The notes below the pieces were generated by a model. That model had not been told where the DNA came from. It searched no databases and was given only the letters and a program-made list of their open reading frames with translations. A stretch of 64,000 bases of DNA from the NCBI RefSeq assembly GCF_006345805.1, contig NC_043011.1, positions 63,810,464 to 63,874,463 of the forward strand, written 5' to 3'. This document shows, piece after piece, positions 1,322-51,561 of the stretch. This DNA is from Octopus sinensis (lineage: Eukaryota). Both the position numbers and the translations under genes were made by a program. Position 1 is the first letter of the stretch; each line of letters begins with the position of its first letter.

Positions 1322-1429
1322 TGATTATTCGCAGAAACGTTTGAGGCTTATGCAGATATGGGAAATATCGACGTAATTTGAGACAAAGCAATGTATAATA
1401 CGATTGGCAGGTTGGGTCATACAGACTGA
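1322..1429 (-). pseudogene. Six-Cys family copy D, exon 2 (pseudogene)
   Basis: Phase-1 frame gives (V)SLYDPTCQSYYTLLCLKLRRYFPYLHKPQTFLRII, the same x6-C-x7-C spacing as copies A-C. The expected acceptor AG reads GG. The third Cys (tgc) is out of frame by one base. Donor GTAAGT is intact at 1321. Confidence 0.6.
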
Positions 1430-1616
1430 CCATGTGAGGGATATCACACGACTACCGTATTATTTCTTCACCGGAATTTAGTAGACACTGGGCCAGATAT
1501 TGACAAAGCATAACGTATATAACTTTTTAATATCGATTAGAAATGTGCGTTATAATGTTACGTGAACTTCCACACACTTTCACGAACAGTCACACACACG
1601 TATATACACAGGTGTG

Positions 1617-1683
1617 CTAGTATATATATATATATATATATATATATATATATATATATATATATATATATATATATATATAT
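1617..1683. repeat. (TA)n microsatellite
   Basis: Pure TA run. Confidence 0.95.
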
Positions 1684-1716
1684 ACACTGATTCGTACACG
1701 CACATATATACACACA

Positions 1717-4143
1717 CATCATCATCATCATCATTGTTCGAGCGTGGTCGAGACAATGGAATATACCATGCTACGCCAGACTTCACGGTCCATCATGGCA
1801 TTACGGAGGTCCTGTTGCTGGATGCCTGTATCCCTGGAGATTACATCAGGGTAGGAGAGTGTGCGCCTTCTGGTATTGCGAGTAGATGACTTCCAGAGGA
1901 GAAGAGTAGAAATTACCTCTTTTTCAGCTCTACAACAATGTCCAGCAAACTGGACTCTCTTACCTTTCACAAGAGATGACACAGGTGGTAGTTTCCCATA
2001 TATTTGCATTTTGGTTGGATGGCGCTTTCACGAGAGATTTTGAGCTCTCATAAGGAGGCGAGTGTAGGTTCCATCCAACCGCCTCTCAAGCTTCTTTGAT
2101 AAAGTCCAGGTTTCTGAGCCATATATTAGAATTGGTTCGACTGTGACTTTGAAGATTTCAAGTTTGAAGTCTCTACTTAGATTTGATGACCAGATCGTAT
2201 GCATGTCATTACAGGCTGACCAGGCCATACCTTTTCTAGTTAGAAAATCTTGTCCAGATGATGATATGTATGAACCAAGATATTTGTAATAAGAAACCAT
2301 ATTTAAGGGCGCATTGTTGAGAGTATGGATGATGCAATCACTGTTGGACAGGCACTTGTTTATGTTTTCAGTCTTGGCCTCATTGAGGTAATGACCTACA
2401 CAATTTGAAGCTTGTTCAAGAGATTGTAAAAGAGACTGGGCATTGGATAGAGAATCACTGATAAGAGCGATGTCGTCAGCAAAGTCAGTGTTTGTCAAGT
2501 ACTCAGCTGGGTGTCTGGAACTTCTTGGATTTATTTCAAAGCCCTTGCCAGAGATGGTATCAACTGACGTACGTAGCACATAATCAACAACAATGATGAA
2601 AAGAATTGGGGCGAGTGTGTCTCCCTGCAGTATTCCGGCTTTGATTGAGAAAGATGATGTTTCTCCGTCAGGGGTTAAGATGGTTGAAGACGTATCTGTG
2701 TAGAGGACCTTGATGGCAGAAATGAATTTTGTCTGGAATCCCATAGAGCTTAAGGATTTCAAACATCTTGTACCTATCTACAGAATCGAACGCTTTAGAA
2801 AAGTCTACAAATACCATTGCAAGATCGTGATTAAATGTTTTTGATTCTTCAATAAGTCTGCGTAGGCATAGTATCTGGCTCAGCGTTGAGCGCCCATGTC
2901 TGAATCCATTTTGCTTCTTTCGGAGCAAAGGTTAAACAAAAAGGACAAGACGATTTAGAATCAGTTTGTTGAACAGTTTTGCAGCAATTGACATTAGAGA
3001 TATACCACTGTAGTTGTTGACGAGGGACAAATCGCGTTTTTTGTGTATTGGGATGATTTGAGATTGGTGCCAAATATTTGGAGCGACAAAGGTGGAAAGT
3101 GTGTGGTTGCAGAGGTTGAGCAAAAGTGTGTGAAATCTATCATTCTTCCAAATTATAGCTGGGATGTTGCCGGGACCAAATGCTTGCGAGGCTTTTAGTT
3201 GCTTGGTGGCTGATGTTAGTTCAAATATGGTAAAAGGGGAGGTGTTGATGTCCAGCGTGTCTGATATAGGCACACTTGGAAGAGTGGGGTTATCAGGGAT
3301 TTTGGCATTCTTCCCAAGGAGGTTTTTAAAATGGGTCGAACAATTTTCTTAACGCTTCTTAGCTGATCCCACTTTAATTCTAATTGATGACCCAGAATTT
3401 TTGCCTGATAGGTCTTTGATGGATTTCCAGGCGAGATGGTGTTTTTAATAATGTGCTCTTTGGATAGTTTACTAATTTTGCCATTGATAAATTCGACGTC
3501 GGCGTTCAAGTAAGCCTCATCAAGATTCTTCTTGGCAGCTATGAGTTGGATCTTCAGTGACTGGGATGGGGAAGGGTGGTAAGCTAGTGATATAGACTTT
3601 AGATGGTTTCTGGCTTCGATGGCATTTGGGGAATTAGAAGGTTTGCTCTGGCCCCATCTCTTCTTTTTGGGAAGAGTAACCAGTGCAACTTCCTCTGTTG
3701 ATTTGTTTAGGCTGCTGTATACTTCTTCAATGTTCTCAGCATCTATTTCAGAAGTAGACAAAGATTGAAATGTGTTATAGACCTCAATAGTAAATTGTTT
3801 GGACATATCGGGGTTAGATAAGACTTCCTCCCAGTCGATCGTTTTCATCGGGTGAGGCATAGCATTTTTGGATGCGCGAAGACTAAGCTTAACGGTAGCT
3901 GATACACTTCTGTAGTCAGAGCCGACAGAACTAAAGGAAGAGTAGGATCTCGAGTTTTTAACACTATTGCGTGATTTCTTTCGAAAGATGAGGTAGTCAA
4001 CGTTTGCCCTATCACCAAGTGGGGACTCAAATGTCCAAAGTTGACCTTTTGGTTTCATAAAAGAATTGTTCGAGGTGTAGAGATTAAATTCCTCCAAGAA
4101 GACTTTGAGCATTTCTTCGTTCCGATTAGTTTTAGAGTTGAAA
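1717..4143 (-). mobile_element. RTE-clade (RTE-X-like) LINE, 5'-truncated and frameshifted
   Basis: Endonuclease C-terminus (WTFESPLGDRANVDYLIF..SVGSDYR), RT motifs FVDFSKAFDSV, GILQGDTLAPILF and DFADDIAL, KYLGS, KRKRG-type C-terminus (QLPPVSSLVKGKR), and a (GAT)n tail at 1717-1734. Split over several ORFs. Confidence 0.9.
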
Positions 4144-4314
4144 GTAAATTAAATATGAGTGTAGATGTGTGCAGTTAAGTAAGAATGCGAGTAGGAAGGG
4201 AGAATGGTAGAGATCATTTTTGTGAAGTAGCCAAGCACAGATTTGGTATCATTCTATGAAGTATAAAATTCGGATGTGTTCAGGACAAGAAGGAAATATG
4301 ATATAACGACTTAC

Positions 4315-49245: not shown

Positions 49246-49973
49246 TTACAGGCTTTTTATATCCAATTGAGTATTCCTAATGTCTCCTTTCTTCCCTGAG
49301 GAAATGTAATACATTTGACAGTATGTATGAAAGTATTGGCTAACAGCCCGTAGATCAGACTGAAGGCATGCCCGGTCACCCACTTCATTGATGACCTTTT
49401 GGAGTTTGAAATCATCTGCAGAGATTCTTATGTTATTGTGCTTGATAATGTCAATAATGCCATTGATGTAAATGATGAAAACAAGTGGGTCCAAAACAGT
49501 GCCTTGTGGAACACCATTACTGACTTTGGCTGGGCTTGATTTTACTCCTTCGACTAAAACGTGTTGGGTTCTGCCTGTCAGGAAACACTTGATCCATTGT
49601 AGTATCTTCCCAGAGACACCAATTTTGGATAGTTTTTTCAAGAGGAAAAGGCCTCGTTATCAAAGATCCTGCTGAAATCAAGGTAGCTGTCACCAGTATT
49701 CGAGGCCTCTCCCGAACCACTCAAAATGCCATCAAAATGATGCAGGAGCTGCGTTAGGCAGTTCCTTCTATTACAGAACCCTTATTGTTAGAGGTTCAGG
49801 AGTTTTTTGCTTTCAAGAAAGTGGGTTATCCCTGATCTCACTACCCTCTCAAATACTTTGATATGAGAGGTGAGCGACATCGGCCGGTAGATCCCTGCAA
49901 TTGTCTTGCTTTCCTTTTTGAAAACTGGGACAACAGACTGAGAAATAAAGTTTTCAGGAATACATGCAAGCAT
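49246..49973 (-). mobile_element. CR1/L2-clade LINE RT fragment
   Basis: YRPMSLTSHIKVFERVV, GVSGKILQWIKCFLTGRTQHV, GVPQGTVLDP and ISADDFKL. Confidence 0.85.
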
Positions 49974-50313
49974 ATGATTGTAATAACTTTTCTATATCTG
50001 TATATATATGTATGTATATATGTGTGTATGTGTGTGTGCGTGGTATAGGAGCGTTTGTATGCGAGAAATATTACTTTAAATAATTTGAGGATTTAACGAA
50101 TTTTGCAGTTAGATTTATCAACCAACGAAACTTTGAGTGGCGTGCGACAACATCGTCACGTTTCTTTTTCCAATTTTCAACTTGTGTTCTGGGGCTATCA
50201 AGTATTCGAATTTTTTTTTTTTTTTTTTTTTTTTTTGGTAGATACATATTTCTACGCATTTTCAAACCATGATCTGAATTAAAAGCTTGGAGAATACTGA
50301 AGAATGTTTGCAT

Positions 50314-50392
50314 GAATAAAGTTTCGAATAAATAATGTTTCGAATAAATAAAGTTTCGAATAAATAAAGTTTCGAATAAATAAAGTTTCGAA
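50314..50392. repeat. 16-bp minisatellite (tttcgaataaataaag) x~4.5
   Basis: Direct. Confidence 0.9.
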
Positions 50393-51524
50393 AAAATATG
50401 ATCAATACTGTTTGCCAATTTAACAATGCAGAATTCGAATGTAAAACAGTATGTAGCGACAGATGTGTTTCGAAATCTACAGGTTTAACTTTAAAAAAAC
50501 TGTGTTTGCTATTTGAGGACTCCGTTATATTAAATATACTTGTAGCGCTGTGGCTAATATTCTAAACGTACATTATCTCATATCTAAAATGATAATAATA
50601 TAAAAGAAAGCCTGGTAATTTTACTTTAGTAAAAAGCCTAGTAGTAATATTATAATCATTTTATTAACACCAAAACAATTATTAGCGGCTAAGGAGGCTT
50701 TGTTACTGAATTCTGTGAATGATGAAATAACTAGAAATATGAAAGAAAAACCGTCCTGGTTATGACATTTATACTATAACGATCTCCTAAAGTAAATATG
50801 ATAACCATGTGGCCCAAAAAACAAACAAAATACTCAAACACATATCACTTCGACAGTGAGAGACGATTAATATTGTCATGCACAAGTAAATGAAAGATCG
50901 GTTGTCACAATAAATTCATTCTAGAAATTCACAAATGAAGACCAACGTTAATAAGAAAATAATTAAAACAGAAACGGTGTAATAGAATTAAACAAAGCAA
51001 AATGTAAACAAATTGAGTGTTTAATTTATTTTCAAAAATATTTGGGGGAAAATGTGTCCGATTTGATTAAGTGGTGTCCGGTGTTCCATTTTAATATGGT
51101 AAGAGGAATAGGGTCCAATAAAATAGGAAACGGACGAAAATTTATTTTAGTGCCTATATATACATACACGCACGCATATATCTTCAGATGAATACACACA
51201 CATACACATACATATGCATATATATATACATACAAAGATATGTAGTACATATATATAGTAGTATACATAGTAGTATATATATAGTATATATATATATATA
51301 TATATATATGTATACACACAGATATGTATATATATACATATATATATATATATATATATATATATATATATATATATACACACAGATATGTAGCTATGTA
51401 TGTGTGAGTGTATATAAGAAAATGAGATGGCACCTATGTATAGATGACTGAGGGAGACTTAGCATTGTATTAATATGTTACATAGAGATATATTGGTACT
51501 GATGAAATATGAGTAGAAACTTAC

Positions 51525-51561
51525 CAACAATAAAGAAAGGAAAAAGTATTAAAAGTTTCAT
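51525..51561 (-). CDS. Six-Cys family copy A, exon 1 (ATG + signal peptide)
   Basis: gccATG aaa ctt tta ata ctt ttt cct ttc ttt att gtt g|GTAAGT encodes MKLLILFPFFIV+G, 37 nt. Confidence 0.88.

Follow-up and report, generated by a model that had tools for sequence, protein, structure and literature searches.

A tandem cluster of small six-cysteine genes in Octopus and its possible relation to the RGM N-terminal domain

Cephalopod genomes are known for expanded gene families that are restricted to the lineage and linked to unusual nervous and sensory systems; for most of these orphan families neither a fold nor a function has been assigned. How are the genes of such a family built, and what kind of protein do they encode? 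These questions are raised by 64,000 nt of Octopus sinensis DNA (contig NC_043011.1, positions 63,810,464 to 63,874,463; the whole stretch is called the window here and is numbered from its first letter). An earlier reading of the letters alone, referred to below as the sequence-only reading, had proposed that the minus strand carries an unannotated tandem cluster of four paralogous genes for proteins with a signal peptide, six cysteines and a glycosylphosphatidylinositol (GPI)-like C-terminus. Three of them, A, B and C, are intact paralogous genes arranged in tandem, for which four exons each are predicted, but the fourth copy, D, proves to be a one-exon relic and not a two-exon gene. It is probable, on the evidence assembled here, that A, B and C are independent four-exon genes for membrane-displayed binding modules resembling the N-terminal domain of repulsive guidance molecules (RGMs), and that they are tandem duplicates of the whole unit.

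Gene structures of the cluster

The predicted exons and the upstream region shared among the paralogues are given below. Profile E-values are those of the independent family profiles described later in this section, and orthologue coordinates refer to the O. bimaculoides locus L001.

51525..51561, minus strand: gene A exon 1, coding part; MKLLILFPFFIV plus the first base of Gly, predicted signal peptide, donor G/GTAAGT
48358..48451, minus strand: gene A exon 2; 94 nt, phase 1 to 2, GAGFYNCKYAANAGCDMPFALSKKPGSRFC, 48% identity with exon 2 of paralogue E
47504..47591, minus strand: gene A exon 3; 88 nt, phase-0 end, TYRMFPYCFEHVNDYCTGYFRFVYYHLCV, profile E 3e-5
44213..44272, minus strand: gene A exon 4 (new); IILFRIFFAAAVIILLAHM, stop and overlapping AATAAA, hydrophobic putative membrane-anchor tail
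29625..29661, minus strand: gene B exon 1, coding part; MKVSIILFGLII plus G, predicted signal peptide, donor G/GTGAGT, orthologue 3997-4033
28596..28695, minus strand: gene B exon 2; 100 nt, 32 residues, profile E 2.6e-8, orthologue 4579-4678
26515..26603, minus strand: gene B exon 3; 89 nt, phase 2 to 1, RLQVYESCFEGSFVECKWFFHDQHFSVCP, profile E 2.8e-6, orthologue 6340-6428 with 86% amino acid identity
24488..24612, minus strand: gene B exon 4; AHEAPTNNDALFYVKPPHKLLMVLILLHMVLCFANLFGHYV plus stop, GPI-like or hydrophobic tail, orthologue 7810-7932
17661..17697, minus strand: gene C exon 1, coding part; MKSLMCIWILIV plus G, predicted signal peptide, donor G/GTAAGT, orthologue is exon 1 of LOC128249883
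11928..12030, minus strand: gene C exon 2; 103 nt, 33 residues, identical peptide in O. vulgaris P0002, profile E 2e-5
9743..9831, minus strand: gene C exon 3; 89 nt, RIQLFEVCLQLTDEVCGEFFQELVYQDCF, profile E 3.8e-4
7501..7604, minus strand: gene C exon 4; DEVLMPVTVVDNMGSFASVSNCNMFAPLIIATWR plus stop, weakly hydrophobic tail, 70% identity with exon 4 of LOC128249883
51562..51681 (A), 29662-29781 (B) and 17698-17817 (C), minus strand: upstream region conserved among the paralogues

The signal exon of each gene contributes 37 coding nt, starting at 51561, 29661 and 17697, and ends in phase 1 at a GTRAGT donor, as had been read before. All eight junctions proposed at that stage (51525/48451 and 48358/47591 in A; 29625/28695, 28596/26603 and 26515/24612 in B; 17661/12030, 11928/9831 and 9743/7604 in C) have canonical GT-AG borders with polypyrimidine tracts. 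In all three genes the signal exon is followed by two domain exons and a tail exon, giving 37/94/88/60 nt in A, 37/100/89/125 in B and 37/103/89/104 in C, and predicted precursors of 92-116 amino acids (aa; 116 for B, 110 for C). These sizes and phases agree with the original proposal for B and C, but exon 3 of A measures 88 nt and ends in phase 0 rather than 1. Exon 2, which runs from phase 1 to phase 2, encodes x6-C-x7-C-x14/16/17-C in A, B and C, respectively, and exon 3 encodes x7-C-x7-C-x11-C; the spliced products match the motif C-x7-C-x14/16/17-C-x8-C-x7-C-x11-C exactly, within the x14..17 range that had been stated. Through exon 3, spliced A reads MKLLILFPFFIVG-GAGFYNCKYAANAGCDMPFALSKKPGSRFC-RTYRMFPYCFEHVNDYCTGYFRFVYYHLCV. 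Exon-3 identity amounts to 8/28 between B and C and to 6/26 between A and C. Exons 2 and 3 of B and C make up a symmetric phase 1-1 module, flanked by a signal exon and a tail exon that are both of phase 1, an arrangement that permits duplication in series and probably explains the multi-domain members of the family.

The last exon of A was found by comparison with a further paralogue. The window shares ~98% identity with chromosome OX597831.1 of the O. vulgaris reference, a level that would suit another haplotype or assembly or the sister species O. sinensis. It runs antiparallel to the locus L002 there, and L002 contains an intact paralogue, E, upstream of A and beyond position 64000 of the window:

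L002 5891-5927, 8450-8486, 10881-10974, 24865-24952 and about 28100, O. vulgaris reference: paralogue E

In paralogue E the signal exon exists in two alternative versions, MKLLVILSFLIVG and MERFIIFFFFIVG, and an intron of 14 kb separates the domain exons; E is the closest relative that gene A has. When the DNA 3' of A is compared with the DNA 3' of E, both show a conserved block ~3 kb beyond exon 3. It contains an AG acceptor and a short phase-0 open frame for a hydrophobic tail, together with a stop and an overlapping AATAAA. The tail peptide is IILFRIFFAAAVIILLAHM in A and NFLYPLIITAAVIIVFARM in E, and from this comparison 44272-44213 is identified as the missing last exon of A.

Conservation among the paralogues extends outside the coding exons. 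The sequence-only reading had noted the nucleotides just before the ATG, and the similarity does hold there and reaches ~100 nt further upstream; it includes a AAACATGTGTTACA-like motif at about -95, a TATA-like TTATATAT around position -65 and TTGATTTGA..AATATC directly in front of the ATG. The promoter was duplicated together with the gene, which points to co-regulation. At the other end, the stop codon of each gene is followed by a poly(A) signal within ~200 nt.

The window DNA is AT-rich and contains many microsatellites and retroelement fragments, as is usual for octopus genomes. For the scan of its reading frames, exon-2 and exon-3 profiles were built from 45 family domains at other loci, leaving out the window genes, their orthologues and their closest paralogues, and were run against all 2,279 six-frame stop-to-stop fragments of the window. 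Five of the six domain exons, namely exon 3 of all three genes and exon 2 of B and of C, are recovered, the best unrelated fragment having an E-value of 0.13; exon 2 of A was missed among these fragments. The agreement is more than chance.

In a protein search with a profile of A, B and C two entries were retrieved, O. bimaculoides LOC128249883 and a hypothetical protein of O. vulgaris (P0002). LOC128249883 (an 'uncharacterized protein' of 109 aa) is the orthologue of C, modelled as a stand-alone gene with exons of 37/100/89/104 nt and GT-AG borders, one codon apart from the C model. The two loci are collinear, with 82-87% non-coding identity, and an orthologue of B with intact, collinear exons lies just upstream of LOC128249883 (L001 3997-7932), with a further intact family copy downstream (L001 17644-21404). 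P0002 (L002 10001-92331) is an 82-kb model of 155 aa that spans the whole cluster; its only family content is exon 2 of C, verbatim, the remainder being non-family sequence, and it is a mis-join. The description of the cluster as unannotated therefore stands for A and B, which match no protein in the database searched, but not for C, whose orthologue is annotated in O. bimaculoides and whose exon 2 was taken into the O. vulgaris mis-model. No gene model was among those found for A or B (including the O. vulgaris annotation of L002), for the B orthologue or the downstream copy of O. bimaculoides (neither is listed in the gene table of L001), or for E. Small genes of this four-exon type are overlooked or wrongly joined in current octopus annotations.

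The cluster extends past the window, with at least one intact paralogue upstream of A and another downstream in O. bimaculoides. Within the window, copy D comprises one exon; the second segment had been assigned to it by the sequence-only reading:

4315..4351, minus strand: signal-exon relic of copy D; KKFLICKCFLIV plus G, ATG destroyed, donor GTAAGT kept, pseudogene
1322..1450, minus strand: proposed 'exon 2 of D', unsupported as a family exon

The D signal exon is 83% identical to the C signal peptide of O. bimaculoides, and the DNA upstream of it (66% identity over 470 nt) is a diverged copy of the upstream region of the paralogues; by this similarity it is a convincing relic, and D a dead copy of one exon. 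The segment 1450-1322 fails as its second exon: it has an in-phase stop, its third Cys is not in frame, it lacks nucleotide similarity to any other exon 2, and the family profiles do not pick it up. Even the out-of-frame 'Cys' codon differs in the O. vulgaris reference. About 550 bp past position 1 of the window, a weak exon-3-like remnant (L002 97593-97688, plus strand; profile E 0.035; ...RKVYKILLN...CKRYF...) could be a decayed exon 3 of D. Between the signal relic and the supposed exon 2 lie an RVT_1 fragment (2028-2762, minus strand) and an adjacent long ORF (3216-4112, minus strand), an arrangement that suggests an insertion into the dead copy.

The Octopus family and its rate of change

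An exhaustive HMMER search with a four-sequence domain profile against 1.84 billion representative proteins (E <= 1e-3) returned 32 matches. All 20 that were looked up by name come from Octopus (O. bimaculoides, O. vulgaris and O. sinensis) and are labelled 'uncharacterized' or 'hypothetical', save the two-domain paralogue P0006 (A0A0L8GPX5), which UniProt named automatically 'GDNF/GAS1 domain-containing protein'. P0012 (2,418 aa, metagenomic) and P0026 were dropped because they match part of the profile through repeats or low-complexity sequence. A word-indexed homology search found no match with B alone and only two proteins with the profile of 52 domains, adding nothing to the exhaustive search. 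Most members are proteins of 80-140 aa that, as read from their sequences, have a signal peptide, a single domain and a hydrophobic C-terminus; P0003-P0006 carry 9, 4, 3 and 2 domains in tandem. No publication or described function was found for the family in a literature search. The members form a real, largely uncharacterised and lineage-specific family that has so far been found only in Octopus. The sequence-only reading had not recognised the family, but it is recognisable, with annotated 'uncharacterized' members in three Octopus species and a recurrent weak match to Pfam RGM_N.

In an alignment of 52 non-redundant domains the cysteines are near-invariant, and the consensus is C-x7-C-xxAxxxYPxxxPDxxYC-xRLxxxxxC-x7-C-xxxF-x7-C. 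The five domain exons recovered in the window match the family profiles, with their YP, PD and C-x-R-L motifs, at E-values of 2.6e-8 to 3.8e-4; gene A lacks the YP and PD motifs and groups with paralogue E. The family has dozens of copies, chiefly on one chromosome, and some are fused into proteins with 2-9 domains. At least 12 annotated O. bimaculoides genes share the chromosome of the orthologous locus (one of them ~240 kb off), an O. vulgaris paralogue lies ~830 kb from the cluster, and a multi-domain subgroup is found on a different chromosome. The three-domain LOC128249887 (O. bimaculoides, L003 10001-34687) has six annotated isoforms that differ in the parts of domain exons included, implying that the domain content of family members can change through alternative splicing.

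The comparison with O. bimaculoides shows fast change on a fixed scaffold. Amino acid identity per exon of B and C is only 53-86%, and the non-synonymous (dN) and synonymous (dS) distances are 0.20 and 0.24 for B (dN/dS 0.83) and 0.20 and 0.16 for C (dN/dS 1.24), whereas all 12 domain cysteines, the frames and the splice sites are retained. Exon divergence, ~18%, about equals that of non-coding DNA, 13-18%. In the comparison with the very close O. vulgaris reference, 5/963 sites differ within exons and 57/3583 within their 150-nt flanks (Fisher p = 0.0076), and this three-fold lower divergence indicates constraint. The contrast between exons and flanks, together with D as an example of real decay, is the basis for regarding A, B and C as functional genes with a fast turnover of exposed residues. 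The pattern named by the sequence-only reading, birth-and-death tandem duplication in which the signal exon is conserved and the Cys-framed domain has strongly diverged, is supported, and the conservation extends to the promoter region. The further suggestion of a diversifying family holds as far as fast evolution is concerned, but a dN/dS near 1 means rapid evolution and is by itself no proof of diversifying selection; for a claim of positive selection the data are too few.

Predicted fold, membrane anchor and rival explanations

AlphaFold2, run on an alignment of 47 sequences, models the domain confidently as a three-helix bundle (mean predicted local distance difference test score, pLDDT, of 88; core >94), with helices at residues 3-21, 31-41 and 47-60 and two cysteines on or beside each, so that the six cysteines most likely form three disulfides. 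The RGM N-domain likewise has three helices and three disulfides, and binds BMP2/GDF5 (PMC7354924). Pfam RGM_N (PF06535) has a gathering cut-off of 24.2 bits. Gene C scores 13.1 bits (E 0.12), gene A 12.3 bits (E 0.2) and paralogue E has an E-value of 0.04, these proteins lying at 12-15 bits, while B gives no match. Ten of 29 other members match as well (13/36 members scanned overall), and any other Pfam family is matched by at most two of the 29 members scanned together. The cut-off is passed by the multi-domain paralogues P0009 (29.1 bits) and P0004 (37.9 bits). When two family profiles were run against 177,635 PDB sequences, the four best matches were all RGMB N-domain chains (best E 0.036); the similarity is visible to profiles only, phmmer of P0009 against PDB giving no RGM match. 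An hhalign comparison with the N-domains of RGMA/B/C gave P = 0.0012 over the Cys3-Cys5 core at a probability of 19%; the RGMB sequence used is consistent with the residue numbers shown in the PDB search. RGM_C was not matched in any Pfam scan, and neither this von Willebrand-D-like domain nor its GDPH cleavage site was found; the proteins end right after the 60-aa domain and the tail. Lacking RGM_C and lying below the Pfam threshold, the window proteins do not count as members of the RGM family. Distant homology of the Octopus domain to RGM_N is not established, yet it is probable.

A and B end in a hydrophobic stretch, which is weak in C, and the tail of many paralogues has the look of a textbook GPI signal; GPI anchoring is putative, and weak for C. 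In the proposed mechanism, the exon-1 signal peptide would direct the precursor to the endoplasmic reticulum and be cleaved; exons 2 and 3 would supply a domain of ~60 residues, folded as three helices with two cysteines each and stapled by disulfides; and exon 4 would add a short linker and a hydrophobic C-terminus that most likely directs GPI attachment, or otherwise serves as a tail anchor. The domain, a probable distant and minimal relative of the RGM N-terminal domain that clamps on the fingers of BMP/GDF ligands, would then be exposed on the outside of the cell membrane. By analogy, its likeliest action would be that of a membrane-tethered protein-binding module (a co-receptor, a decoy or a recognition tag), the exposed surface presumably changing fast between species while the Cys scaffold stays fixed. 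The duplicated unit would run from the promoter through the signal exon and both domain exons to the tail exon.

Several observations weigh against this reading, and most of them bear on the RGM link. The resemblance may be convergent, a generic Cys-stapled helical motif in a domain that was born in Octopus or belongs to an unrelated fold family. The similarity rests on one motif of 25-30 residues, D-x2-[FY]-C-[KR]-x-L-[RK]-x-[YF]-x2-C-x7-C, every window protein stays below the cut-off, and the scores of P0009 and P0004 are sums over repeated weak domain matches. The outer cysteines also differ in spacing (C-x4-C...x21-C in RGM, C-x7-C...x11-C in the Octopus domain), the hhalign probability is low, and one paralogue was automatically named for another family, GDNF/GAS1. 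Foldseek found no significant PDB match for either model (pLDDT 74.7 and 88.0), a null result that is uninformative rather than negative, small helical bundles being a weak case for this program. In favour of homology, RGM_N is the sole recurring Pfam family, RGMB chains come first in PDB with two different family profiles, and both domains have six cysteines, three helices and a C-x8-C-x7-C core, next to a putatively membrane-anchoring C-terminus in most members. Convergence is accordingly a real possibility, although a doubtful one. As for the remainder of the reading, the tail of C is only weakly hydrophobic, the hydrophobic stretch of A begins right after the last Cys, without a spacer, and so resembles a tail anchor more than it does a GPI signal, and a dN/dS near 1 would fit relaxed constraint as well.

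Other explanations concern the genes themselves. Exons of one long multi-domain gene, or read-through transcripts, might be expected from the existence of members with several domains, from the phase 1-1 module of B and C, which could be spliced in series, and from the single model P0002 that covers the region in O. vulgaris. However, every unit has its own ATG and signal exon behind a conserved TATA-containing upstream region, as well as its own stop and nearby poly(A) signal; the C orthologue is modelled alone in O. bimaculoides, P0002 is non-family apart from C exon 2, and the phase-0 end of A exon 3 does not allow splicing into the phase-1 exon 2 of a next unit. A single gene is therefore very improbable. 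Still less credence is given to neutrally evolving pseudogenes with frames open by chance: B and C keep frames, splice sites and cysteines in both species, the exons are less diverged than their flanks, and the six cysteines and the YP, PD and C-x-R-L motifs are kept across the 52 domains, while D illustrates real decay. The dN/dS values, the equal divergence of exons and non-coding DNA from O. bimaculoides, the death of D and the failure of A and B to match any protein in the database searched speak for it nonetheless. Secreted soluble peptides (pheromones, venom or salivary components, antimicrobials), with the C-terminal exon as a propeptide, deserve somewhat more weight, since small, Cys-framed, fast-diverging products of tandem arrays are typical secreted effectors, and some members, among them P0010, P0013 and the multi-domain P0003, have no hydrophobic tail. 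Yet most single-domain members end in a hydrophobic stretch of 12-20 residues after small residues, the standard GPI layout, the RGMs, as the sole relatives that can be detected, carry a GPI anchor at the cell surface, and no dibasic processing sites flank the domain. Soluble peptides are thus unlikely, and so is the toxin named as one option by the sequence-only reading, given a putative membrane-anchoring tail.

For one orphan family, correct gene models, a definition from 52 domains, a fold prediction and a testable RGM link are gained. If the link is true, a conserved co-receptor domain was trimmed to a minimal GPI-anchored module that then radiated, and there are concrete candidates for binding and localisation experiments; if it fails, a clean, fast-evolving, Cys-scaffolded family of surface proteins is left.

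Other features of the window and comparison with known systems

Intron 1 of gene C contains a long interspersed nuclear element (LINE)-type retroelement (14309-17000, plus strand, antisense to the gene), with ORFs matching Exo_endo_phos (14309-14905) and RVT_1 (15574-16479). The element explains the GC-rich bump at 14-18 kb and makes up much of this 5.6-kb intron. Further features are the following.

49246-49641, minus strand: reverse transcriptase fragment in intron 1 of gene A
52880-53935, plus strand: reverse transcriptase fragment
57622-58902, plus strand: ORF of 426 aa with a C-terminal GIY-YIG match of 21.6 bits, below the Pfam cut-off of 22.6 bits; may be a Penelope-like retroelement
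31883-32389, plus strand: ORF of 168 aa without a Pfam match at E <= 0.001, which looks like the N-terminal part of a mariner-type transposase
23810-23900, downstream of gene B: tandem duplication of 44 nt, 2.1 copies, 100% identity

Microsatellites of the types (AT)n, (AC)n and (TATC)n are very frequent across the window.

The closest counterparts of the window genes are the uncharacterized Octopus paralogues (e.g., LOC128249883, LOC128249887, LOC128249852, LOC106870881 and LOC115219848), which share domain, exon structure and chromosome with them. The RGMs (RGMA/B/C, DRAGON, hemojuvelin) are likewise extracellular proteins with a signal peptide and a hydrophobic or GPI-type C-terminus, features that are predicted on the Octopus side. 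Their N-domain is small and entirely alpha-helical, has three helices with six cysteines (two per helix in RGMB, as judged from its sequence), and has the core motif and its Cys spacing in common with the Octopus domain. By contrast, the Octopus proteins are without the von Willebrand-D-like RGM_C, which is the neogenin-binding domain of RGM, and without the GDPH autocleavage site, and the 60-residue domain is the entire mature protein; the RGM genes are conserved and present in one or few copies, whereas those of Octopus are massively duplicated and fast-evolving.

GDNF/GAS1 proteins (the GFR-alpha co-receptors and GAS1) offer a second parallel as GPI-anchored, Cys-rich, all-helical extracellular modules that bind ligands. 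Their domains exceed that of Octopus in size and have about 10 Cys and five helices, compared with six and three. Pfam GDNF (PF02351) gives no match at E <= 1 in the 36 members scanned, and membership was rejected, its sole support being the automatic name of P0006.

Proteins of the Ly6/uPAR family (Lynx1, CD59) consist of ~100 aa and are encoded by a signal exon, a small disulfide-rich domain and a GPI tail exon, in tandem clusters that diverge rapidly. Their fold is a beta-sheet three-finger with 8-10 Cys, and there is no sequence similarity; given the all-alpha model with six cysteines and the lack of a Pfam UPAR_LY6 match in the members scanned, membership in this family was rejected too. 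The logic of the genes is the same, however, and as small membrane-tethered modulators the Ly6 proteins offer the best functional analogy. A wider proposal, that Octopus has undergone a radiation of minimal membrane-tethered RGM-N-type modules, with dozens of tandem genes and fusions, into a new cephalopod-specific signalling or recognition system, is tentative and rather unlikely. If true, it would mean diversified cell-surface ligand traps, co-receptors (e.g., for BMP/GDF-class ligands) or recognition tags, with non-synonymous change at or above the neutral rate, following a logic like that of the Ly6/Lynx modulators in a different fold.

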